Shown: piece by piece, positions 3,843-59,394 of the stretch
Layout of the letters: each line of letters opens with the position of its first letter
Numbering within the stretch: the stretch's first letter is position 1
Assembly: GCA_964270895.1 (NCBI GenBank)
Contig: OZ185443.1
From: Podarcis filfolensis
Taxonomy: Eukaryota
Reading direction: 5' to 3' (one strand)
Length of the DNA stretch: 64,000 bases
The notes under the pieces: model-generated
Database searches by the model: none
What the model was told of the DNA's origin: nothing
What the model saw: the letters and a program-made list of their open reading frames with translations, nothing else
Translations under genes and position numbers: made by a program

Positions 3843-4450
3843 ATCCAAAAACAAATACAGAACTTTATGCTGCATGTGTCTGGTGGATGTCAGAGCACTG
3901 TAGGTGCACATCTTTTCTAGTACAATTGCTTCATCTGAAAAGCTGCCTTGGGTTCTCTGGGCTTTTAAGCTGCTTTCCTGAAGGAAGCCACACACCCCTA
4001 AATTCCTAGCCAGTGTATCTCCTTGGGCTGTCACGTGCCCAGTGCACTCATTCCCGTTTTTGTTGAATAAGGACTTTCTCTTGGATGCAGCTTGTCTGAC
4101 CTTCCTAAAGCAATTATCGTGTTGCAGTGCATCCACGAGAGGGTTCAGTGCTTTACCTCCATGGCACCTTCATAAACCACTGGAGAAGAAAATTGTCTTC
4201 TCTCCCTTTTTTTGTTTTGCTTTCAGGAACACTTTGCAGTCTTGACAATGTGCAGCTTGCCCAGGCATTGAAAACTTGTCACTTCACAGCCTTCGTTCGT
4301 TGCTGGAAGTGGGTTTGCGTGTATCAGCCGCTAGGTGACCTTCAATAGCTACATCCAGTCGATTGCTCCTCACCTTAAGAATCTGAGATATGAATGGACC
4401 TTTGGTCCTCCCTTTGCAGCATCAGTAACCATTCTAGGATTCTGAACTGA

Positions 4451-4809
4451 AAAAAGGACCCCTGACAGTTAAGTCCAGTCGCGAACGACTCTGGGGTTGC
4501 GGCGCTCATCTCGCTTTACTGGCCAAGGGAGCCGACGTTTGTCCGCAGACAGTTTTTCCGGGTCATGTGGCAAGCATGACTAAGCCGCTTCTGGCGAAAC
4601 CAGAGCAGTGCACAGAAACGCCGTTTACCTTCCCGCCGGAGTGGTACCTATTTATTTACTTGCACTTTGACGTGCTTTCAAACTGCTAGGTTGGCAGGAG
4701 TTAGGACCGAGCAACGGAAGCTCACCCCGTTACGGGGATTCGAACCGCTGACCTTCTGATCGGCAAGCCCTAGCCTCAGTGGTTTAGACCACAGCGCCAC
4801 CTGCTTCCC
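4451..4809 (-). mobile_element. Sauria SINE, second subfamily
   Basis: Full length. TSD aggattctgaact at 4436 and 4810. Diagnostic segment aaaaactgtctgcggacaaacg. Confidence 0.92.
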
Positions 4810-5361
4810 AGGATTCTGAACTAGGAAACCTCTAATTAACCAAAGTTTCCTGTTTTGTCACTAACCATTACTATGATTGCCAGCTTCAGAATGAGCCAGA
4901 ATATTAAACTTCAAACCATGGTTTGATGTACTGACTTGTTCTGAAGCTGGTAACCGTGGGTTCTCAGTTTAGAAACCGTGGTCAGTTGGTGGCTTCTTGG
5001 CTTTCTCTCACTACAGAAGTAACAGCAAAGTGGCTGCATGTGTAGGCAACAGGTTCTTCGGTTTATTAAGCTGAGATCTCTGCCCTAGGGATAAGGGCAT
5101 AAGGAGTGCTTGGTGGAACAGGCCAGTTGACCCACTGAGTCCAGCATCCTGTTTTCACTATGGCTAACCAGATGCCTGCAGAAAACCCTTAAGTAGGACC
5201 TGAGCACAAGAGAGGGAAATTTGTGCCGTGGGAGGAGAAGAAACTACATTTCTGTAGCTAGCTGTGGATTAACAAACCATCATTAATGATAAAAGAGTTA
5301 TGTTTGCACTAACCTGTTTGTCCGCAGATCGCAAGGCTGAACCTCAACATTGTGTCGTTGG

Positions 5362-14328: not shown

Positions 14329-14483
14329 NNNNNNNNNNNNNNNNNNNNNNNNNNNNNNNNNNNNNNNNNNNNNNNNNNNNNNNNNNNNNNNNNNNNNNNN
14401 NNNNNNNNNNNNNNNNNNNNNNNNNNNNNNNNNNNNNNNNNNNNNNNNNNNNNNNNNNNNNNNNNNNNNNNNNNNNNNNNNNN
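14329..14483. other. Assembly gap (155 N)
   Basis: Run of N. Confidence 0.99.
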
Positions 14484-15487
14484 CAAATTGGGAGACTTTC
14501 ATTGTACATCTTGACATGAAACCCCTCTCCTGTTTCCATATGAACCCCCTGCACCACTTATTTGATTCAGATGTACTGCTTCAGGAGAAGGGCTGAAGCT
14601 CAGTGGCAGAACACATGCTTTGAATGCAGAAGGCCCCAGATCCAACCTCTGGCATCTCCAAGCAGGGCTCTTGCCAGAAAAGTGTAGACAATGCTAAGCT
14701 AGATGAACTCATTTGGCACAAGACAGCTTCCTATCTACCTTGTTTCTGTTCGCAGGATATATTGCCCTCTCATTTTTGTTTGTGTGGCATAACCCTCAGC
14801 ACTCCCTGTCCTCAAACACCTTCCTACCAGCCAAAGCTTTTGAGGCCCCGCTCCCCATCCCCCATCCTAATTCTACAGAATATCTTTTCTATGAGTTTTT
14901 CCTGTTTGGTGCATCCATCTTGCTTTCAGAATATAGCCAGGTTCTTTGTTTTTCCGTATGTGTGTTCGTTCCCCTAATTTTGGCCCTTGGGATATTGCAG
15001 GTTGCAAAATGAAATATTGTTTCCAGAGAGGGGAATTTAGAATAGTGCACAAAGTGATAATAAACGTAGACTGTTTAGGGGAGAGAGGAGAGGAGAGGAT
15101 GTGCAGATCTCATTCAGCTTTTGGAGACAGTTGCCACCATTCATTAAAGTGGCCTGAAAGAGTCACAGTTAAACGATGCCAGGCACTTCCTCTAGTGCTG
15201 TCCAGGTTGCCTTTTCAGCAGAACTCTCCGTTCCTCTTGCCCAAAGGAGGCCATTGAATAGGACTTTAGGTCACCCGTTTTTCTGGCTTCACTTGAGCCT
15301 CTCAGTAGACACCAAATTTAACCCTGTGCTGTTATCTTCAAGTCGATAACCAATGCTTTATTTGTTTTCTCTTCCTGTGTGTTGCAGTGTATTTATTAAA
15401 TCCTTCCATGCCATCTACCTATTTATCTATCTATCTGTCTATCTGGCTTCAGCCAAAGCGGTGCAAAGGAAAAGTTGCATCAGGCTG

Positions 15488-24789: not shown

Positions 24790-25122
24790 GGTTCTCTGCC
24801 TATAAAGAAAAAGACTTTAAAGGACCTCGGCTGATCAGAGTACTAAAGGTCCCTGGGCATGCACCATAGAGCAAATTGGTGCTGAGCCTGGAAGCTCTCT
24901 CCTGTTTTTTTGGACGAGGAGCTGTGTGGGTCTGCTGTGAACACAGAGCTTAGAGGAGTGGGGGAAGAAGACGCACGTCCTTTTGAACTTTACCCCCAGC
25001 TTGAAAGTTGTTTTCTTTTTTTAAGAAGTAAGTTGTAAGAAAAGAGAGACTTGAGAAGTAGGCACCTAGCAAATAATAATAATAATAATAAAAAGAGCCG
25101 ACAGCCCGCACTCAGAGCTGAG
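24790..25122 (+). promoter_or_regulatory. Candidate intronic promoter and 5'UTR of the NBCe1-A transcript
   Basis: TATAAAG at 24801, about 320 nt upstream of ATG 25123. G-run at about 24715-24726, short uATG ORF at 24859, (AAT)6 at 25072-25089. The TSS cannot be determined from sequence alone. Confidence 0.4.
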
Positions 25123-25382
25123 ATGTCAGATGGAGCAGGCGACGAGGAGAAGCAACCAAATGGATGTGGAGAGAAGGGAAGGGAGAGGAATCGCACCTCC
25201 CTGATCATCCTGCAGTCCGTTAACCGCAGTATTTTCACCTCTGCAGTCTCCCCCGCCGCCGAACGCATCCGCTTCATTTTGGGCGAAGACGATGACAGCC
25301 CTGCGCCACCCCAGCTCTTCACGGAACTGGACGAGCTCCTGGCTGTGGATGGGCAGGAGATGGAATGGAAGGAGACCGCAAG
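25123..25382 (+). CDS. SLC4A4: SLC4A4 NBCe1-A (kidney-type) first coding exon: 42-aa unique N-terminus read through into the shared exon
   Basis: ATG at 25123 gives [51 protein letters not shown]. This matches the recalled human NBCe1-A start [50 protein letters not shown]. Donor AG|GTGAGT at 25383. Spliced A-form length to 59394 is 1368 nt = 456 codons. Confidence 0.85.
25247..25382 (+). CDS. SLC4A4: SLC4A4 shared exon (136 nt), [45 protein letters not shown]
   Basis: Acceptor ttttcacctctgcag| ends at 25246, donor gtgagt. Near-identical to recalled human NBCe1. Confidence 0.97.
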
Positions 25383-25554
25383 GTGAGTTGGCATTGCTTT
25401 GTCTTTTCTGGGGGAAGCGGACGGCCCCTTGAGGAAGAAGTTGTGGCAAGCCATGTGTTAATTTTGGGGAGCACCTTCTTCTGGAAATTTGGGGGGTTCC
25501 ACAAGTATCATTAGGACTGTAGCTCAGTGGTGGGACCTGAACTGGATAGGTCTG

Positions 25555-26201: not shown

Positions 26202-26330
26202 NNNNNNNNNNNNNNNNNNNNNNNNNNNNNNNNNNNNNNNNNNNNNNNNNNNNNNNNNNNNNNNNNNNNNNNNNNNNNNNNNNNNNNNNNNNNNNNNNNN
26301 NNNNNNNNNNNNNNNNNNNNNNNNNNNNNN
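26202..26330. other. Assembly gap (129 N)
   Basis: Run of N. Confidence 0.99.
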
Positions 26331-31934: not shown

Positions 31935-32388
31935 CAGTGGTACCTCTGGTTATGAACTTAATTCTTTCCGGAGGTCCGTTCTTAACCTGAAAGTGTTCTT
32001 AACCTGAGGTACCACTTTAGCTAATGGGGCCTCCCACTGCTGCTGCGCCGCCGTCATGCGATTTCTGTTCTCATCCTGAAGCAAAGTTCTTAACCCGAGC
32101 TACAGTGGTACCTCGGGATACAGACACTTCAGGTTACAGACTCCGCTAACCCAGAAATAGTACCTCGGGTTAAGAACTTTGCTTCAGGACGAGAACAGAA
32201 ATTGTGTGGCGGTGGCGCGGCGGCAGCAGGAGGCCCCATTAGCTAAAGTGGTACCTCAGGTTAAGAACAGTTTCAGGTTAAGAACGGACCTCCGGAACGA
32301 ATTAAGTTCTTAACCAGAGGTACCACTGTACTATTTCTGGGTTAGTGGAGTCTGTAACCTGAAGCGTCTGTAACCCGAGGTACCACTG
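31935..32388 (-). mobile_element. Tc1/pogo MITE containing a nested, inverted copy of the same family (32103-32328)
   Basis: Outer and inner TIRs CAGTGGTACCTC, each flanked by TA. Confidence 0.9.
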
Positions 32389-33542
32389 TACAGAAAAGGT
32401 GCTATATGTGAACCTGTGTCTGCAACACATCTGCAATTTTTACAGAAATGTTTGGATCAGAGATTTATGTTTTTAAACACAACTGTCATGGTCTGCCCCT
32501 GTTTCTCAGACCAAGGTTAGGCTTGAGTTTTAAGGCTTTAAATTAATTCTACAGGCATCTTCCAAGTCAAACACATTTTTCTCCACCATCTGTGGCACAA
32601 GGCAGGTTTTGAGCTCTGTATTGTCTGCCTTGAAGCCCATAAAATTCCCCCAGGGAGCTGGTTTTTGCACTGTAAACCAAACTTTGGTTTGGTGAGACTG
32701 TGTGAACAAGCAGGTTCTCAGAGAGCTTCCTCTGCAGTCTTTTTTGCTACACTGCACCATGGTTTGACTTAACACACTTGTCTTGTGGTTAAGGCCTCTC
32801 CAGAATAACTGTGAGTTTGTTCTGCTAAGGTTTGTTCTTGTGTACAGCTCATGGTCATTAAAGTATGATCTTAACCACGACTTCTGGTTTGGACAACATA
32901 CTAAATTAAATGAAAAAGAAGATTGCCAACAAAAAGGACAGAAACGAACGTTTCCTTATTTTTCTGCTGTGAAAAATGATTGACTGGGAAAATTTGTCCG
33001 GACAAACCATGGTGGGGTGGGGGTGGGGAAGCAAAGTCTTGTCTTTATCTTCTTTTAGTTGTAGATTAGGACAAAGGGCAAATGCCGTTTGGTGTAGAAA
33101 CATTTTTCCACACCTAAGGGCTGTTTCATAAGCACAGACAAGGGTTGTAAACTCCTGACCTGTAGGGTAGCTTCTTTAGCTTTTAATAGCTGTGTGTGGG
33201 AGAGAGGCCCAGCAGGTGCATAATTAAATCTCCACCACCGTAATGATGGCAGGTTGAGCAGCTGCAGGATTTCGCATTAAATCAACACTGTTTTGAAGGG
33301 AGATCATGCAGGAACTGGAAAGAGCGGGTTGCACGGGGCTCCCTTGAGACATTGCGTCAAACCACAATTAAATAAACTTTACTTTGTCTTGAAGATCTGA
33401 ATAGACAAACCACGATTTGCAGTTGGCTGGCAAACCATAATAAAAAAAATTCTGTTTATTATTTATCAGGCCTTATTTTATTTCCCCTCCATAATATACC
33501 GGTAGTCAAATCACCAAAAAAATACAAAACAATAATTTAGTA

Positions 33543-33908
33543 CCAGAAACAGTACCTCGGGTTAAGAACTTTGCTTCAGGATTAGAACAGAAATCATGCT
33601 CCGGTGGCGCGGCAGCAGCAGGAGGCCCCATTAGCTAAAGTGGTGCTTCAGGTTAAGAACAGTTTCAGGTTAAGAACAGACCTCCGGGACGAATTAAGTA
33701 CTTAACCTGAGGCAGTGGCGTAGCGTGGGTTGTCAGCACCCGGGGCAAGGCAAGTAATTTGCACCCCCTAACCCGTGGATCTGCGCCCCCTAACCCGTGG
33801 ATTTGCGCCCCCTAACCCATGGATTTGCCCTAACCCCAGATGTTGCGCCCGGTGCGGCCGGCCCCCCCTGCACCCCCCACGCTACGCCACTGACCTGAGG
33901 TACCACTG
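33543..33908 (+). mobile_element. Tc1/pogo MITE, 5'-truncated and interrupted by a hAT MITE
   Basis: Matches the 32103 family. Right TIR gaggtaccactg|ta. Confidence 0.85.
33713..33892. mobile_element. hAT-type MITE with internal 22-bp tandem repeats
   Basis: Perfect 17-bp TIR CAGTGGCGTAGCGTGGG and perfect 8-bp TSD acctgagg at 33705 and 33893. Confidence 0.92.
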
Positions 33909-35165
33909 TAAATGACTTAGCTAACATGAATTCATACTTTTTTTAAAAAATGTTTCTTTAAATTATTGATCTAAATTATGGAAAAACTATACTGTGCATT
34001 CGAAAATATTGTGTTACTTTTACAATAATCAACAAAAATAACAAAATTTCCCCCCTTTGAAGCCATAGTTGCTGGTTTATGCTCACGGTGGTTTTGTGTG
34101 TTGTCTGAATTCATGTCTCGGTTACTGCCATTGCTCTACTTCTGGGGGCTAGGGGGCGGCGGCGGTGGTGTGGCTGGAAATGTAAACAGACTTTGAAAAG
34201 CTGGTATCACTGGATCATTTCATCAATTCTTATTGTTTTGAATTTTATTGTGTTATCATCTTCCTTAGTGGGTCATGCAAACTGCTATTCTATTTTATAA
34301 GGGTAGGGGGCATTGAGGATGGAGTGGGTGGTGGCCCAAAAATGTTTGGGGACCACTGATTTAAACGATAAACATCTCTGGTATAGAGGTGAAATTGAAC
34401 TGAGTGGTTTCTTTTTTGAATGAATGAAGACCACTGTTCATTCGAGACCGAAGAAGCAGTCACGAAAAGCACAGCTGGAATCAGAAAAGATGCTCCCTGG
34501 AATCCATTTGGGCTCCACAGTTGCAGAGATATTTGTGGCTCATGCGTAGCAAATAATAAACAGCGGGAGGCATAGAGACATGTTTCTAGTGGATACTCTG
34601 CCTTTCTGAAACTGCCTTTCCCTATATCATAGAATCATAGAAACATTGAATTGGAAGAGACCCTGAGGCTCATCTAGTCCAGCCCCCTGCAATGCTTATG
34701 TTCTGTGTACAAATCCGACTGTATTTCCACAGGGGTTGGTTTATAACCAATATGCAAAACCAACTTTAATCCAGTGGGAGAATGTGCACCAAAGATGAGA
34801 GATAGTATTGTGTTGATGGCTGGTTTTTCTGTTTCTTTGCCTTGGAGCTGACTGCTGCTCCTAATGCATACCCAGTTGTTTGTTTGTTTGTTTGTTTTAT
34901 TTAAACAAATGCTAATTTATATCATTTTAAATTGATGTGATGCATATTTTATTTGGTATTTTAAAGGCCGCCAGGCCAAAAATCGGTATATAAATAAGCC
35001 ATAACATGTAAAAAGAGGAGGGAAAGAACTTTGCAATACTTTTGAGACTAATGGCTTTGTTGTGGCACGAATTTCTTAATGAAATATCTGATGATGTAGA
35101 TGCTTGTTCTTGAAAGCTCATACAGCAGCGCTTCTTTGTAAGTTCATCCTTACAAAGTCTCTCTC

Positions 35166-35209: not shown

Positions 35210-35211
<2 letters not shown>

Positions 35212-35212
35212 G

Positions 35213-35373
35213 GTGGATAAAGTTTGAGGAGAAAGTGGAACAGGGTGGAGAGAGGTGGAGCAAACCACACGTTGCCACATTGTCCCTTCACAGCTTGTTT
35301 GAGTTGAGGACGTGTATAGAGAAAGGGTCGATCATGTTGGATCTGGAGGCCTCATCGCTCCCTCAGGTAGTAG
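35213..35373 (+). CDS. SLC4A4: SLC4A4 exon (161 nt), [53 protein letters not shown]
   Basis: Acceptor (CT)n-acag|, donor G|gtaggt. Contains the SLC4 signature [18 protein letters not shown]. Phase matches both neighbours. Confidence 0.96.
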
Positions 35374-36453: not shown

Positions 36454-36633
36454 AGATGGTTGTTGACAACCAGATCGAGACAGGCCTGTTGAAGCAAGAA
36501 ATGAAGGACAAGGTCACTTACACCCTGCTCAGGAAGCATCGCCACCAGACCAAAAAATCCAACCTGCGCTCCTTGGCCGACATCGGGAAGACTGTCTCCA
36601 GTGCAAGTAGGATGTTTACCAACCCAGATAATG
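36454..36633 (+). CDS. SLC4A4: SLC4A4 exon (180 nt), [11 protein letters not shown]...[16 protein letters not shown], including cassette I
   Basis: Acceptor tgtttgcag|, donor G|gtaatg. Frame is continuous. An internal donor at 36607 removes 27 nt. Confidence 0.96.
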
Positions 36634-36965
36634 GTAATGCAGAAGCCAGTGGGCTTTGGCCTTCCCGTAGAGACCCACCGAAACCCTGCTCCCAACTAAC
36701 TCCATCACCATCTCATGGCAACGCATCTAACCCCACGAGTAGAGTAGCAGACCATACTGACGGATGTATCAGTTATGGGCTCTGAAGGCTTCTTAATGCT
36801 GTGGCGCATTGCTCTAACCATATCTCCGTGGGCTAACTGAGAAGAGACATGGGCGCGCTTCGTTTTCGTTAGTCTGCTTTAGTCAGTCATTTCGGTAAAA
36901 CACTTGGCGTGACACACGCACAAAACGCACAACACAAACAACGATGTGTCCTCCAGAATAGAATC

Positions 36966-41111: not shown

Positions 41112-41659
41112 AGCTTCTCCTGTGTGGAATGACCAGTAGGAGAATATTCTGATGTTTAGATTTATTTTAAAATAATATTGGCTGCTTGTTCTGTATGAAC
41201 CAGACACTGAGGTTTAAAACAAACTCTAGTCCTTTTCTAAACAAACAGACTACAATACCTGTGTTTTGCTGATTTCAACAACCCTTCAGTTTCTTATTTT
41301 GTATGTGACAACAACCCAGGATTAGTGGAAAGTGAAACCAAATTCTGGCTGCACAGGAGGAGAAGCTCAAGACTTTGCTCAGGCTGGTTCTAGCTTGGGA
41401 ACACAGTGCAGCTAAACCATGGTTTAGTGTTACATGTGAACCAGCTCGTTGAATTACGTGGGCATGCTCAGTAGCACTGGTAGAACAGCTGCTAGCAAGG
41501 AGAGGCTGAGATAATTCAGAAAAGGCTTGCTGAGAGTCTGGTGGGCCTTGAACCAAGAATCTGAGGGTCTGGGAACAGAACTAGGAAGTTACTGTGGACT
41601 CAGGCATCATAGTCCTTTGGGACATGACTGGCCCTATGGGTCTTCTGTATTGGCCATGG

Positions 41660-41795
41660 CAGTGTTTCTCAAACCTGGATCTCCAGCTGTTGTTGGATGA
41701 CAACTCCCATCATCCCTGGCTGGCAGGATCAATGGTAAGGGATGATGGGAGCTATAGTTCAACAACACCTGGAGACTCAAGTTTGAGAAACACTG
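41660..41795. mobile_element. hAT/Charlie-like palindromic MITE
   Basis: TIR cagtgtttctcaaac...gtttgagaaacactg. TSD ggccatgg / ggctatgg. Confidence 0.85.
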
Positions 41796-42539
41796 GGCTA
41801 TGGTATGGCAGGTGAACAGAGCAGGGCTTTGGGTTGGTGTAGTTCAGTCAGAAGCCAACAGCTTGAGCTATTGACCTAAGGACTTTCCTCCCAAATATTG
41901 ATTCAAAGAGAAATGCCTTAAAAGTTGAGCTAGTAGCCATGCTAGAAATTATTTTTTTATCTCAATGCTACCCTTTAGGATAAAACAATAGTTTGGAAAC
42001 ATAGAATTTATCATTTATTCATCACAATTACTTATTCAAACTGAAAGTTGTTAAAAATGCATTGAGGCAGCAGTTGACAATAAGGCGTGTTGTTGGACAG
42101 AACAATGGGGTTTTATTCCTTTAAGTGTCATTCAGGTTATTCTAAGTAGCTGAATAATGCATCAGCAGAGTTTAGAAATAATGAGAGTAGAAAGAGGAAC
42201 AGAAGGGGAAGGGTGTGCGAAAGAAGAGACGTTTCTCCAGGTGATGCAAATCATTGGCACGTTATTTGAAGTGTTACAAAATGGAATACATCCCCCCCCC
42301 CCATTGTTGTGCATGTTGGCTGTGAGTAACAGCCAAAGAAACCGCTTTCTTTCTAAATTCTTCAGATGTTTTCTGGGTACCGTTGTCAGGTTGCGGGTTA
42401 CAAACCAGTGACAGCAAAAGTTTTGGCCATCTCTTACGACCTTTGGTTGCAGAATTTGCCATGGTTATTTACAAAGCGTTAAGCCACAGAAGCATCCGAC
42501 AACCTATTCATTGGACGTAGGTGTTCAGAAGGAATCCCA

Positions 42540-42770
42540 TTCACAGAATACTAGAGTTGGAGGGACCCCAAGGGTCATATAGTCCAAGAATCTCAGCTAA
42601 AGCATCCACGACATATGGCTGGTCATCCAACCTCTGCTTAAAAACCTCCAGGGATGGAGAGTCCACAACCCCCTAAGGGAGTCCATTCCACTGTCAAACA
42701 TCTCTTACTGTCAGAAAGTTCTTCCTGATGTTTAGTTGGAATCTCCTTTCTTGTAACTTGAATCCATTGG
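42540..42770 (-). mobile_element. CR1 3' fragment; smaller tails at 34626-34695(-), 50270-50330, 55855-55925
   Basis: Minus-strand frame [22 protein letters not shown], homologous to the C-terminus of the 29394 ORF. Confidence 0.85.
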
Positions 42771-43503
42771 TGGCAAAATAGGACATTGCAGCCCATGTAA
42801 TACATTCGTTATTGGGCAAACTAGGAATATTTACACTCGGACATTCAATTCCAATGTCATGGAAAAACACTATTTCTCCCACAAACTACTATTTCAGCTT
42901 CAAGTGAGTGATCTTGCTTAATGTCCTTACATCTCTACATAGATCAACAAACAGATGCTGCCATAAGTGAGCATTTAACCTGCAGTGCTCAGGTATCAAC
43001 TCACATCATCCCCAGCCAGCATGCATCTGTTTGATTGCTAGGATAAAATACAGTACTGTCACTCAGAGGTAATATTTTTCAGCCTAGGGCTCATTCCCAG
43101 AGGTTAGCTTCCAGATCTTCATTAGTGAGGGGAGAAAAAAAACCAGTTGTATGAATGAGCCACCCAGTTGAAGGCCAAATCCCTATGATTCTGAACTAGT
43201 TTCTTGGATTGAATCTGAGTAAGTTGTGGCAATTATGTGTTTGCACCTTGCCATTTCCTCTTTCTCCTTTTATTTTGAATATTTAATATCTGTATATACA
43301 GACGTCCTTCACGTTTGAGGGTTGCAAAAGGGCAAATATCACAAAACACTGAAAATGCACTCAGTGCCACGTTTTCTACATGTACACGGCAAAATCTGGT
43401 GTTGGAACGGTCTCTAATTGACCTGCGGATGTGCGTAGCTCTCTGTGGTGTGTTAACACGAGTGTCTGAATGCTTTTCTGTCTTAACTCTCTTGCTTCTG
43501 CAG

Positions 43504-43724
43504 CTGCTTTGGCCTTTCTTTTTCTCCTCTGCCTTAACTCTGCTGTCTTCCTCCTCCTCCTCTTCCTCCTCCTCCTCTTTGCTGCTGCTCTCGAATGTGT
43601 GCTCTTCCTCCTGCTTGCGACTCTAAAGCCCGCAGCCCGCTTGAGAGTTCTGTGCCCTGCCTAGCAACCCGCACGTTGGATGATGAAATCCGGGTGCAGC
43701 GCAGCCCCAGCGTGGGATGGCTAA
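43504..43724 (+). other. Candidate alternative first exon or poison cassette exon of SLC4A4
   Basis: Acceptor-like tcttaactctcttgcttctgcag| ends at 43503. ATG 43595 opens 43 codons, then donor A|GTAAGT at 43725, phase-compatible with exon 45099. Local CpG enrichment. Confidence 0.35.
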
Positions 43725-45098
43725 GTAAGTGGATGACGGGAAAGGAGTTGCACTTTCCAGGGAAACGGTGTGCATGAAGGGGGTGTGGTTGTGTGTCAGG
43801 GGATCAGTCTGGAGATGACGACGGCATGCAAAAATGGTGGGCTTCCAAGGAATTAAAGCTCCAAAATACATCTTTGCATGGGGAAAACTGACCCTATCCT
43901 TGAACCGGGAACTCTGTGAGCTAAGATGCTTCTGCTACTGCAGACTGCAAGGATAGGGGAATGCAACAGCATGCCCTGTGACTGGCAGGCGGACTAAGTA
44001 CCCCAAAACCATCCTTCTAGTTTAGTTTGGTCAACAGAGCCATACCACATGGTTGCTACAAGCCAGTCTTAAGTCCACTGCTCTCTAAACTCGCTGACCT
44101 CAAGGACCCAGAACTAGATGTTCAGGTAGAACTGCCCTTGGCTGTAGCCTGGCCCCAAACCATCTGTTTGACGTCGTATCTAGGTTGGTTCAGTGCAGGA
44201 CAGCTGCAAAGTTGGGGTGTAGGACCTGATTTCCATGATGCTACTGAATTGAACTCACCAGGCCTCCTTGTGTACATGACCTGATAATTTCCTTGCAGTG
44301 GTGGTGAAGGTTTATCACATATGGAGAGTTACAATTCAACTTCCCTCACTAATGCAGTGATTAAGGATGTTGCCTAGTGACTTGTTAATTCTATCAAGTT
44401 GTGCCTGAATAGAGGTTTGGACCATATCTCAACCCAACATGGAAGCACTACATGCACAAGCTCTGTAATTGATTTTACCCTCTTATTTATTTTGCATGTT
44501 CTTTATGTGACTCAGAGGCAAAAACAAGCTGAAGATGAAGGGAGCCTCCATGGGATTATTATGTGCCCCCAGCTAACCAAATCAGGATGTTTTTGTTTTA
44601 CACTCATGTTGATCCTAAATCTGTAGCTCAGTCAACATGCTGCTTCTTGCATTATCTTCAGTTAGTAGAGTGAGCAAATCTTTCACCCCTTCTTTCTGTC
44701 AGCTTTTGGTTTAGATGTACATAAAAGTTCAAACTTTTCTGATCAAGGCCTCTGGAAACATAACCTTTTGCATGTTAGTGAAGTCTCCTGGCTGGCCAGT
44801 TGTGATCTTAATGGAATCCAGCCAAAATTAAACACCTATTGAGTCAAGTGGGGAGAATCAAGAATTTCTCCAAATGAAATTGTTGAGGATAAAAGAGATA
44901 AAAGAGCCATATATATATGTATTCTGCCATTGCTTGGTGTTGGTACTTGCTTTAGCAGATAGCGGCCGTCTTATATTGAGCTTTCAACTACCCTTCATGT
45001 AATTGGCAAACTGCCTTGCTCAGGTATTGCTGTGGCCCGAGACTCTGTGTGTCCCTTAGCAAACGGTATTTTAACAGACCTTGGTCTTCTTCTTGCAG

Positions 45099-45175
45099 GC
45101 AGCCCAGCCATGACGCACAGAAACCTGACTTCCTCTAGTTTGAACGACATCTCTGACAAACCTGACAAAGAACAG
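45099..45175 (+). CDS. SLC4A4: SLC4A4 exon (77 nt), [26 protein letters not shown]
   Basis: Acceptor cttcttcttgcag|, donor CAG|gtaagc. Confidence 0.96.
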
Positions 45176-49000: not shown

Positions 49001-49452
49001 TGATACACTGGATATTTCAGAGCAGAGCTGAGTAATGCCTTTGGCGCCAAGCCATAACAATGGTGAGTTCATGATAGGAGAGATACAGGTCCCTGCAACC
49101 CTTGCCTTGGTTTCTCTTCTGTTCAGATCCAGGCCTGGTTGTATACTATATGGTAGGCTGCTGTGTTTTCTGCATGCGCTGCTCATAGCGTGACTTGGAA
49201 GCTCTGCATGCCTCTTTCCTCAGCAGCCCCATGACCTCAGGAGCTCTTCCTGAGCCACCTAACCCGCCTCGAGGCTCCCCCTGTCCTCATACTTGACATA
49301 AAAGATAATAAAGAGCAGGCAGCTACTTGATCTTGTTGTTGGGTTGTTTTTTTGAACCAACTTATTTGAATTTTACAGTCTGCTGCATCTAGAAGACTGT
49401 AGCTTAAAAGTAGAAAGCAAGTTTAAAGTCTGACTAAAGCAGCACTAAAGCA

Positions 49453-49805
49453 GGGACGCGGGTGGTGCTGTGGGTTAAACCACAGAGCCTAGGACTTGCC
49501 GATCAGAAGGTTGACGGTTCAGATCCCTGTGACGGGGTGAGGTCCCATCGCTCGGTCCCAGCTCCTGCCAACTTAGCAGTTCGAAAGCACGTCAAAGTAC
49601 AAGTAGATAAGTAGACCTCCAGCAGGAAGGTAAATGGCGTTTCTGTGCGCTGCTCTGGTTCGCCAGAAGCGGCTTAGTCATGCTGGCCACATGACCCGGA
49701 AGCTGTACGCCGGCTCCCTCGGCCAATAAAGCAAGATGAGCGCCGCAACCCCAGAGTCGGCTATGAGTGGACCTAATGGTCAGGGGTCCCCTTTACCTTT
49801 ACCCT
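49453..49805 (+). mobile_element. Sauria SINE
   Basis: Full length with ctttacctttacc tail. TSD core taaagca. Confidence 0.92.
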
Positions 49806-50634
49806 TAAAGCAGCACAAACATAGCAACAGATCCCACTCCTCTCAAACAGGCACAGTAACTCCTTAACACCCAAATGAAATAAAAGTGGGGGCCAGAGAT
49901 CTACAGAAAATGTCCCGTTTTCTGGTCTGAGAAGAAGCCAAGTGCCTTGAGTAATGCCCACTCACTTTGTGGCCATTTAAGATTGGGAGTCTCCAGGTGC
50001 TTCCACACTGAATGCATCTGCCAGTCACCAAAAGCCGCAGCTCCTTTAGGCATGGGGGAATTCGCAGCAGAGTGAGGTTACAACACTCTGTTTGTGTTGC
50101 TAGATGTTACTGGGATAGAGAGGAGGAGGGATATAGAAAGCTGCCTGTTGACAAGTCACACTATTAGCCATCTAGCCCAGTGTTGTCTACACTGACTTGC
50201 AGAAACTCTCCAGTATGCCGGGCAGAGAAAAGTCTCAAATCACATCTGTCATGGACGCTTTAGGTAAGTTTCCTGCCTTGCCGGGGGTTGGACTAGATCA
50301 TGCTCCCTTCCAACTCTACAATTCTGTGGTTCTACACCCCCTTCTAACTGACCATGTTAACTTATAATGTCAGGGGCCAGGAGAATCTATGCATACCATG
50401 TGCTTTATTGCTAAGCGATGGGTCGTCTCTCCCTCCCCGAAAAGGAAGAGTGGGGAAGCCTCCATTAATTGTTCCTGTTGGTTCATGCTAAGTGAGTGGT
50501 CTACCACTGGAGCTAATTCCCCTCCACGGAGAGTCACAAGGCTTTGTGTTCAGCAGCTAGCACCCATCTTCCTCCCAAATCTGCAAACGCACCATTGGGA
50601 ACAGTATTTTTGTGAGTGTGTAATGTATTGGATT

Positions 50635-52810: not shown

Positions 52811-53534
52811 TAAACATTCGGGTATGTGGACCACAAGATTGCATAATTGGACACAGTGTTTTTGTGCTGCCAGGTAGTCTGTGAAATCTTCCAGGGGAGA
52901 AACTTGGTACGAGTGGTAAGAGATGGAAGCATCGCAATATCTCCAGTATGTGCTCAGTTTGCGTGGGCTTTCCGAAGCAAATGTGGTTTCGTGATTTATT
53001 CTCAAGGGATCTGCAGAACATCACGTGTGTTGTGTTGGCTAGAACACTAAGGACAAGATGAATAATTGCAGCTGGAATATCCTTCCAGCTGCACTTTTCA
53101 AAGAAGAAAGAATAAGAAGTGGAAACTTCTCTGCCCTTCACTGGAGCATCTAGGATCAATTCGTCACCTTAAGCTACTCTGAAATTTAGACCTTTTTCTC
53201 ATGCAGTTTCCACCAGCGGTTTCCACCAGCAATCTATCAAGGTGATGGTAGGGACGTATTTCATTCCACAAACATTTTTGCCTCCTTCCCCAGTTCTGCA
53301 TTTACCTCCAAATGGAAATGCAGCTCGGGCACTTCTGCGTAATACTGCACACGTAAATGGGACACTCTTCTTGTTGTTGTGGCTGTTATGGTGTGCTGCC
53401 ATTATTAAATTGCAGTGACATATGGGTAAAAGGCAATTTGTAAATTAATAATAAACAGTATATCTGAACTGTCCAGTAGATACAATTGCATATATTACAA
53501 ACTTACGTGTTGGTGTTAACTGGAGGAATTGAGG

Positions 53535-54190
53535 GTGGGATCCTGCTTGTGGAATGATCCCCCTAGGGAGGTTCGTTTGGCACCTTCATGATAAATCTTT
53601 AGGCGCCAGGCGAAAACGTTCCTCTTCAGCCAGACCTTTGGCTGATTAATATTCTACAGCCTTTTACATCTGTCTATGGGAAAGGGAGGGACGCGGGTGG
53701 CGCTGTGGGTTAAACCACTGAGCCTAGGACTTGACAATCAGAACGTCGGTGGTTCAAATCCCCGCGACAGGGTGAGCTCCCGTTGCTCGGTCCCTGCTCA
53801 TGCCAACCTAGCAGTTCGAAAGCACGTCAAAGTACAAGTAGATAAATAGGCACCGCTCCGGCGGGAAGGTAAACAGTGTTTCCGTGCGCTGCTTTGGTTT
53901 GCCAGAAGCGGCTTAGTCATGCTGGCCACATGACCTGGAAGCTGTATGCCGGCTCCCTTGGCCAATAAAGCGAGATGAGCGCCGCAACCCCAGAGTCGTC
54001 CGCGACTGGACCTAATGGTCAGGGGTCCCTTTACCTTTACCTATGGGAAAGGGAGAAGGATTATTGTTTTGTTGTTTTGTTTTAACTATTTCCTTGTTTC
54101 TGTCCTGCATTTTCTTCTGTGAACCGCCCTGAGATCTTATGATGAAGGGTGATATAGAAATCCACTAAATAAAAATAAATAATTAAAAAT
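53535..54190 (+). mobile_element. L2 3' end interrupted by a Sauria SINE
   Basis: tgtggaatga.cccctagggaggttcg...aggcgaaaacgttcctcttc...tgtgaaccgccctgagatc...(taaa)n. Confidence 0.72.
53688..54040 (+). mobile_element. Sauria SINE inserted into an L2 3' end
   Basis: Perfect 14-bp TSD ctatgggaaaggga at 53674 and 54041. Confidence 0.94.
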
Positions 54191-54459: not shown

Positions 54460-54540
54460 CATCTGATGAAGTGGCCTGCAGCCCACAGAAGTTTCTGCCA
54501 CAATTAAACTTGTTTGCCTTAAACCACAAGAGCCTTTTCG
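54460..54540 (+). mobile_element. Possible Penelope-like element terminal fragment
   Basis: catctgatgaagtggcctgcagcccacagaagtttctgccacaattaaacttgtttgcct resembles recalled reptilian Penelope ends. Confidence 0.45.
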
Positions 54541-54580
54541 TTCTGACGAGACGCCTGTGTCTCTTCTCTCTCCCACGCAG

Positions 54581-54738
54581 CTGAAGAACAAGTTCATGAA
54601 GAAGTTACCTCGAGATGCTGAGGCCTCCAACGTCCTGGTGGGAGAAGTCGACTTCCTGGAAGCCCCTTTCATTGCCTTCGTTCGGCTGCAGCAAGCAGTT
54701 ATGCTCGGTGCTCTTACAGAAGTCCCTGTACCTACCCG
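54581..54738 (+). CDS. SLC4A4: SLC4A4 exon (158 nt), [53 protein letters not shown]
   Basis: Acceptor ctctctcccacgcag|, donor CG|gtaaag. Confidence 0.97.
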
Positions 54739-54771
54739 GTAAAGGAGCCTTTTCTTTTTCTTTTTAATATA

Positions 54772-55031
54772 TAGTCATACCTCATGTTACGTTTGCTTCA
54801 GGTTATGCGTTTTCAGGTTGCGTCCCGTGGCGATCCGGAAGTACCGTAAAGAGTTACTTCCAGGTTTTGCCATTTGCGCATCCGCAGACGCGCAAAATGA
54901 TGTCATGCGCATGCACAGAAGTGGTGAATCATGACCCACGCGTGCACAGATGCGCAGACGCAGGTTGTGTTCTTTTCAGGTTGCGAACGGGACTCCGGAA
55001 CGGATCGCGTTCGCAACCAGAGGTACCACTG
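54772..55031. mobile_element. Tc1/pogo MITE 33 nt downstream of an SLC4A4 donor
   Basis: Left tagtcatacctcatgtt, right aaccagaggtaccactg|ta. CpG-rich interior. Confidence 0.8.
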
Positions 55032-55340
55032 TATTTTTTTTAAATTTTACATAACACATTTCAATTTAAACATATCATTCACCTTCACATTTTAGATTCT
55101 CGGAATCCCTTGACCTCCCCCCGCCCTTCTCTGGTTTTCATTGTCAATCCCTTTTTCTTCCAGCTTATCCCTCCCAATTCATTATAAATATTATTAACTT
55201 TTCCATCGTGTTTTGTAGTTTACAAGTATTACTCTAATCCTGCCAAAGTTTTTAGTTGTTTACATTGGTCTTGCCCCCATGAAGCAGTTGCTGAGACTGA
55301 AGTCCCCACCTCCCCACAGCTCCCAGTTAAGGATACTTTT

Positions 55341-59219: not shown

Positions 59220-59394
59220 ATTCTGTGGCGGTTTAATCAAAGACATCAAGAGGAAAGCCCCTTTCTTTGCCAGCGACTTCTATGATGCATTCAACATCCA
59301 AGCCCTGTCTGCCATTCTCTTCATCTATCTGGCTACTGTAACCAACGCCATCACTTTTGGGGGGCTGCTGGGAGATGCTACGGACAACATGCAG
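59220..59394 (+). CDS. SLC4A4: SLC4A4 exon (175 nt), [58 protein letters not shown] (contains TM1)
   Basis: Acceptor cccttgctag|, donor CAG|gtgagc. Contains the TM1 motif ITFGGLLG. The next exon (GVLESFLG...) was not found before 64000. Confidence 0.97.

Follow-up and report, generated by a model that had tools for sequence, protein, structure and literature searches.

A conserved candidate cassette exon within an SLC4A4 (NBCe1) intron of the lizard Podarcis filfolensis

An SLC4A4 intron and the block conserved within it

The stretch of DNA analyzed here (64,000 nt of Podarcis filfolensis, contig OZ185443.1 of assembly GCA_964270895.1), hereafter the window, on which all coordinates are based, carries part of the SLC4A4 gene on its plus strand, with exons identified by translation up to position 59388. 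The product of this gene, NBCe1, is a major acid-base transporter of the kidney, pancreas, eye, heart, and brain; mutations in the gene lead to proximal renal tubular acidosis. The exon translations matched the Pfam families Band_3_cyto (PF07565) and HCO3_cotransp (PF00955), and the exon at 54581 to 54739 (exon 8) found its top PDB chain in NBCe1 (6caa_A, residues 226 to 278; 95 bits vs 65 bits for NBCn1). Judged by these similarities, the gene is SLC4A4, NBCe1 being the closest among the SLC4 members. The element examined in this report is found 6.9 kb from the start of the intron (8.46 kb) that separates 36633 from 45099, where an earlier note, made from the sequence without database searches, had proposed a new SLC4A4 exon, serving either as an alternative first exon or as a poison exon.

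A library-wide phmmer search using a 60-amino-acid open reading frame (ORF) from the element as the query returned 21 matches, 18 of which, each an ORF cluster, carried the peptide. These related genomic ORFs, from other animals, were 66 to 347 amino acids in length and had approximately query residues 11 to 45 in common, at 58 to 87% identity (85 to 87% for the closest). All 18 ran on into intron, diverging directly past the residues ..GWLSK. DNA was compared for six of the ORF clusters (L001 to L014), giving seven other distinct sequences, or eight with the window included. The DNA of these relatives aligned with the window solely in a short block within about 43490 to 43745 (75 to 86% identity), and no other alignable sequence outside this block was found in their contigs (up to 4.5 kb). 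The 19.7-kb contig of L009 was collinear with the window, the series of exon 5, exon 6, element, and exon 7 being unchanged in order and strand, with identical exon boundaries and phases, while the rest of the intron did not align. Since L009 is collinear and the remaining sequence is unaligned, the block is, as read from these alignments, a single-copy orthologous element located in the same intron of SLC4A4. Each relative occurred on one to four contigs with orthologous flanks, no Alu motif was found in the compared contigs, and no second copy of the region 43300 to 43860 was identified within the 64-kb window. Across the constitutive exons, the window and L009 showed raw synonymous differences of 0.45 to 0.62 and nonsynonymous differences of 0.008 to 0.067; the synonymous values place the two species at a considerable distance from each other.

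The exon anatomy was derived from MAFFT alignments of the eight distinct sequences. The features on which the argument depends are as follows.

36454 to 36633, plus strand: upstream constitutive exon (exon 6), from its translation, splice sites, and match to Pfam Band_3_cyto; orthologue present in L009
43481 to 43527, plus strand: partly conserved upstream intronic block, covering the branch point and acceptor proposed in the earlier note, identity 0.64 to 0.74 per 12-nt bin vs 0.3 to 0.5 in unconstrained flanks
43504 to 43626, plus strand: AG-free tract of 81% pyrimidine (C+T), containing (TCC)n at 43546 to 43579 and eight YGCY motifs
About 43591 to 43603, plus strand: 13-nt lineage-specific insertion containing ATG 43595, a gap in 7/7 other sequences, with limits that depend on the alignment
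43627 to 43628, plus strand: acceptor AG (aAG/C, weak at position −3), invariant in 8/8 sequences
43629 to 43724, plus strand: candidate 96-nt in-frame cassette exon of SLC4A4, from the alignment of eight sequences, substitution ratios, and ORF clusters
43725 to 43730, plus strand: donor GTAAGT, with A/GTAAGT invariant in 8/8 sequences
43731 to 43830, plus strand: G-run-rich intron start, with four runs of at least three G in 100 nt
45099 to 45175, plus strand: downstream constitutive exon (exon 7), opening with GC to complete the preceding codon; L009 orthologue at 15050 to 15144
54581 to 54739, plus strand: SLC4A4 exon (exon 8), with 6caa_A as its best PDB chain

Coding signal and splice-site architecture of the 96-nt unit

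The spacing from the AG to A/GTAAGT was exactly 96 nt and free of indels in all eight sequences, while indels of 1 nt and 13 nt occurred just 5′ of AG 43627 to 43628. Identity to the window per 12-nt bin was 0.80 to 0.98 inside the unit and 0.31 to 0.52 from about 10 nt past the donor, so that the drop-off fell within approximately 10 to 20 nt 3′ of 43725. Exon 6 terminates in ..RMFTNPDN plus one G, in phase 1, and the 96-nt unit enters in phase 1 from 36633 and exits in phase 1 to 45099, the same phases being found in L009. When completed by G from exon 6 and GC from exon 7, it gives an Ala codon, 31 further codons, and a Ser codon, stop-free in 8/8 sequences. The phase-1 join to the exon at 45099 had been pointed out in the earlier note and holds, the leftover base and GC forming the Ser codon. 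The two other frames of the unit contain stops in most of the eight sequences, and the cassette frame is also open in the 18 ORF clusters.

The ratio of nonsynonymous to synonymous differences per site (pN/pS), summed over all pairs, was 0.32 in the cassette frame, whereas the two remaining frames gave 1.45 and 1.46. Within the 96 nt, the window differs from L001 by eight synonymous and no nonsynonymous changes and from L012 by nine synonymous changes and one nonsynonymous change, and the first 15 codons of the unit differ between the window and L009 at third positions only. Variable columns among the eight sequences were distributed 13/13/26 over the three codon positions. Because substitutions follow a codon-like pattern in the very frame required by the neighboring exons, these comparisons provide strong evidence for a protein-coding exon of SLC4A4 at 43629 to 43724. 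An acceptor at CAG 43633 to 43635, which would create an 89-nt exon, was also considered and dismissed, because its use would disrupt the frame, L008 lacks it, and conservation by codon is already evident from 43629.

The surroundings of the unit share several features across the alignment. An AG-exclusion zone of 89 to 123 nt, 70 to 82% pyrimidine and with two to nine YGCY motifs, precedes the acceptor in 8/8 sequences. Within the window tract, the sole branch-point-like sequence is CTTAAC at 43533 to 43538, about 90 nt 5′ of the acceptor, and in most of the eight sequences such motifs were found solely 60 to 90 nt upstream of it. The acceptor is weak in all eight (AAG or GAG) and the donor is a perfect intronic GTAAGT. 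In 7/8 sequences, four to eight G-runs were identified in the first 100 nt past the donor, despite a lack of alignment there. A class of PTB-regulated, tissue-specific exons is characterized by distant branch points and long AG-exclusion zones, and the 96-nt exon resembles this class in its AG-free pyrimidine tract, the position of its branch-point motifs, and its weak acceptor. Overall, the splice-site architecture fits a regulated exon. The weak acceptor, distant branch point, CU- and YGCY-rich tract, perfect donor, and G-runs could allow for inclusion regulated by tissue, and, going by general knowledge of such tracts, PTBP- or MBNL-type factors may act on this one.

Lizard exons without the cassette total 226 codons before exon 8, and in the human NBCe1-A chain exon 8 corresponds to residues 226 to 278. 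As the human NBCe1-A numbering leaves no space for an insert, canonical NBCe1 skips the unit. Thus, the segment 43629 to 43724 is read here, with good though not full confidence, as a cassette exon of SLC4A4 (NBCe1) that is conserved, optional, and in frame, lying between 36633 and 45099. Inclusion would swap the Gly codon at the junction for Ala, 31 residues, and Ser, a net gain of 32 residues. These would extend the cytoplasmic domain within its disordered Nt-VR2 loop, immediately past the 9-residue cassette alpha, leaving the rest of the transporter unchanged.

Several observations count against this interpretation. The cassette peptide had no Pfam match and matched no PDB chain at E values of up to 10, and any function given to it is pure inference. 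A word search among proteins of 190 to 607 amino acids recovered genomic ORFs only, with no spliced or annotated fragment carrying the peptide. The relatives were retrieved by a protein search in the cassette frame, which introduces a mild bias toward open, similar sequences. Finally, the acceptor is weak, and in P. filfolensis AG 43503 and CAG 43635 could compete with it, giving out-of-frame products.

Competing readings and local CpG content

The new exon of the earlier note was retained in part: an unlisted exon with a donor at 43725 and a frame leading into 45099 stood up to comparison, while neither of the two 5′ ends proposed for it did. The donor and the open frame are kept in 8/8 sequences, and the ATG is not. 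According to the first of the two models, transcription would start in the CT-rich tract, and ATG 43595 would open a 43-codon leader joined to 45099, yielding an NBCe1 without the first half of its cytoplasmic domain. The parts of this model are present in the DNA, namely a leader rich in CT and (CCT)n (located as (TCC)n at 43546 to 43579), an in-frame TAA at 43535 upstream of the ORF, and the 43-codon ORF itself, which runs from ATG 43595 to TAA/GTAAGT with the donor G at 43725 in the appropriate phase. Internal promoters and N-truncated products are also known in the family, as in kAE1, NBCe1-A, and MHAN-NBCn2 (PMC4664831), and the model could draw on a local excess of CpG. However, ATG 43595 falls inside the 13-nt insertion that is missing from the seven other sequences, its context is poor (tcgaATGt, having C in position −3 and T in position +4), and it is preceded by ATGs at 43429 and 43470 unless transcription begins within the CT tract. 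Frame-breaking indels separate the species 5′ of 43629, yet the AG and a pyrimidine tract of 90 to 120 nt are conserved, and a conserved acceptor of this kind therefore argues for an internal rather than a first exon. The truncated products named above each have their own 5′ exon joined to the common body; in contrast, the 96-nt element is preceded by an acceptor and lacks a conserved start codon. The coincidence of ORF, donor, and phase is also unremarkable, and the earlier note had itself cautioned that the agreement of phase and ORF might be due to chance. With an approximate donor matrix, the window was found to hold 14 ORFs that begin with ATG, span at least 43 codons, and reach an equal or better donor, two of them in phase 1, so the combination is not beyond chance and is expected once or twice per window. 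An alternative first exon is accordingly the least credible of the explanations considered, with only the slimmest likelihood.

Also counted against this model is an observed-to-expected CpG ratio (o/e) of just 0.50 to 0.56. Roughly 20 CpGs had been reported in about 560 bp, and 21 were counted in 43300 to 43860, a segment with a GC content of 0.52 and an o/e of 0.56 vs 0.31 for the whole window, so that it ranks among roughly the top 5.5% of windows of 560 bp. The description as a CpG-enriched island was thus borne out as to the excess. It was not borne out under the usual criteria for an island (GC of at least 0.5 and o/e of at least 0.6 over 200 bp), since the merged cluster at 43513 to 43875 (GC, 0.54) had an o/e of 0.50 and was the weakest of 15 clusters in the window, although it was also the sole nonrepeat cluster located off a known exon. 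Seven CpGs sit in constrained codons of the 96-nt exon, and because of this the local excess seems to be explained in good part by CpG-containing codons under constraint rather than by a promoter island. Eight further CpGs at 43303 to 43459 (160 nt), 5′ of the conserved block, aligned with no fetched relative and are not accounted for by the exon. Elsewhere, most of the other CpG clusters derive from CpG-rich repeats resembling short interspersed elements, which are copies of one another (1781 to 2312, 4325 to 4903, 31953 to 32408, 33538 to 33982, 49386 to 49860, and 53503 to 54108). The strongest cluster in the window (54481 to 55050; 34 CpGs; o/e, 1.0) covers the exon at 54581 to 54739 and extends some 300 nt farther; the distal end of the cluster resembles a repeat also present near 32374.

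The second model of the earlier note was a poison exon for nonsense-mediated decay, in which a 221-nt cassette (43504 to 43724) spliced through AG 43503 would shift the frame and terminate at TAG 43662. In the window, this form can be traced in full: the 221-nt unit, its acceptor ...ttctgcag/ at 43503, a nearby branch-point-like CTTAAC (43483 to 43488), and TAG 43662 in the frame entering from exon 36454 to 36633 were all confirmed. Outside the window it was not found. The AG at 43502 to 43503 is lacking in 7/7 other sequences, being replaced by CAA, TGA, or CCA in six of them, with L008 having no AG there; the 221-nt form is consequently lizard-specific at most and cannot explain the conservation. 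Moreover, the conserved unit is free of stops, keeps the frame as a multiple of three, and is under frame-specific purifying selection, which would not be expected of an exon whose sole role is to carry a stop. The extra AG at 43503 might occasionally be used in P. filfolensis, but a poison exon as the explanation of the locus is very improbable.

The foremost of these alternatives, itself quite improbable, is that the block is a conserved noncoding element, such as an intronic enhancer or RNA element, and that its open frame and AG/GT borders arose by chance. Such an element would agree with conservation that extends past the 96-nt unit, by about 140 nt on its 5′ side and about 20 nt on its 3′ side, and with the failure of the word search described above to recover a spliced form. 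Flanking intronic conservation is, however, usual for regulated alternative exons. Chance is also hard to reconcile with a low pN/pS solely in the frame that fits both neighboring exons, with a comparison in which all eight changes were synonymous, with 96 nt free of indels in eight sequences despite indels immediately outside, and with invariant splice dinucleotides. In addition, an Rfam search of 41500 to 45000 identified no family at the element.

The putative insert among SLC4 variants and the remainder of the locus

Known NBCe1 diversity arises from two promoters, the optional cassette alpha, and a C-terminal switch at exon 24, which together generate NBCe1-A to -E (PMC4664831, 2015; PMC3567025, 2013; PMC8534249, 2021). 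Nt-VR2 is variable and intrinsically disordered, and paralogues carry optional cassettes there (PMC4664831). The Nt domain of NBCn1 includes optional cassettes alpha, beta, and gamma, of which beta binds calcineurin while beta and gamma raise activity, and that of NBCn2 can include insert A, 30 residues from exon 9 (PMC4664831, PMC3567025). The truncated MHAN-NBCn2 loses Nt-VR1 and half of Nt-CR1 (PMC4664831).

The closest parallel to the proposed 96-nt exon is NBCe1 cassette alpha (also cassette I; absent from NBCe1-D and -E), which belongs to the same gene, enters the same Nt-VR2 loop, and is likewise optional and in frame. The two differ in origin, as cassette alpha adds nine residues via an alternative 5′ splice site in exon 6, whereas the new one would be a separate exon some 7 kb into the next intron. 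In the window, an alternative donor, GCAA/GTAGGA, was found in exon 6, 27 nt from its 3′ end (within 36600 to 36640), and is conserved in L009 at about 4330 to 4394; this is the donor that generates the known 9-residue cassette. Were it combined with the 96-nt exon, the junction codon would change from Ala to Thr without loss of the frame.

As a stand-alone optional cassette of the Nt domain, the new exon is comparable to NBCn1 cassette II (123 to 124 residues, binding calcineurin), NBCn1 cassette IV, and NBCn2 insert A. It is similar in length to insert A (32 vs 30 residues). No similarity between the cassette peptide and NBCn1 cassette II was detected using phmmer against all PDB chains (E values of up to 10), including the 1,214-residue NBCn1 chain 9ovr_B, which is matched by exon 8. 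The 96-nt cassette most likely adds to the known class of SLC4 N-terminal cassettes. It is without mention in the reviews PMC4664831 (2015) and PMC8534249 (2021), and among the papers searched none was found to print the cassette peptide strings and none to pair NBCe1 with a 32-residue or 96-bp element. Exact record look-up of the 60-amino-acid ORF and of an antisense 82-amino-acid ORF gave no match. Such an exon may well be present already within automated RefSeq or Ensembl isoforms.

Across 19 sequences, the conserved positions of the insert read aRsPLE.SvpCLa.R...PSvGW, including two R-S-P sites, and the motifs ARxPLExSVPCL and PSxGW were conserved. Some Nt-domain cassettes of NBCn1 and NBCn2 tune activity or bind partners (PMC4664831, PMC3567025). 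By analogy with those of NBCn1, the Ser/Pro-rich insert with its two conserved R-S-P sites could tune NBCe1 through phosphorylation or docking, serving as a module that is regulated by phosphorylation or binds partners. In its fullest form, the proposal is of an ancient 32-residue Nt-VR2 cassette, present across distantly related vertebrates, included tissue specifically through PTBP- or MBNL-type factors, and bearing a phosphorylation or docking motif that alters regulation; this would be a sixth, uncharacterized NBCe1 option, creating new variants beyond NBCe1-A to -E. This extended proposal is tentative, and its chances are put at slightly below even. A separate cassette under purifying selection would imply a further form of NBCe1 with a conserved job, placed in the very loop that holds regulatory inserts in the sister transporters. 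Should the exon prove real and be expressed, it would provide a defined peptide for kinase and partner binding tests, a splice event to seek in tissue-specific and disease RNA-sequencing data, and a stretch of supposed intron where human variants could matter.

Two further SLC4A4 exons were identified upstream of those listed above.

25123 to 25382, plus strand: NBCe1-A-type first coding exon, with ATG 25123 and a donor after 25382
About 35211 to 35371, plus strand: SLC4A4 exon, from its translation

A nonrepeat CpG cluster at 25056 to 25467 (20 CpGs; o/e, 0.68) covers the first of these, and the known internal SLC4A4 promoter thus appears to be kept in P. filfolensis. The window also contains runs of N at 14329 to 14483 (155 bases) and 26202 to 26330 (129 bases). 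A palindromic hairpin at 41686 to 41769 matched the Rfam family mir-5408 on both strands (37 and 35 bits; E values, 3e−4 and 1e−3), far under the family gathering score of 90, and is probably derived from a repeat.

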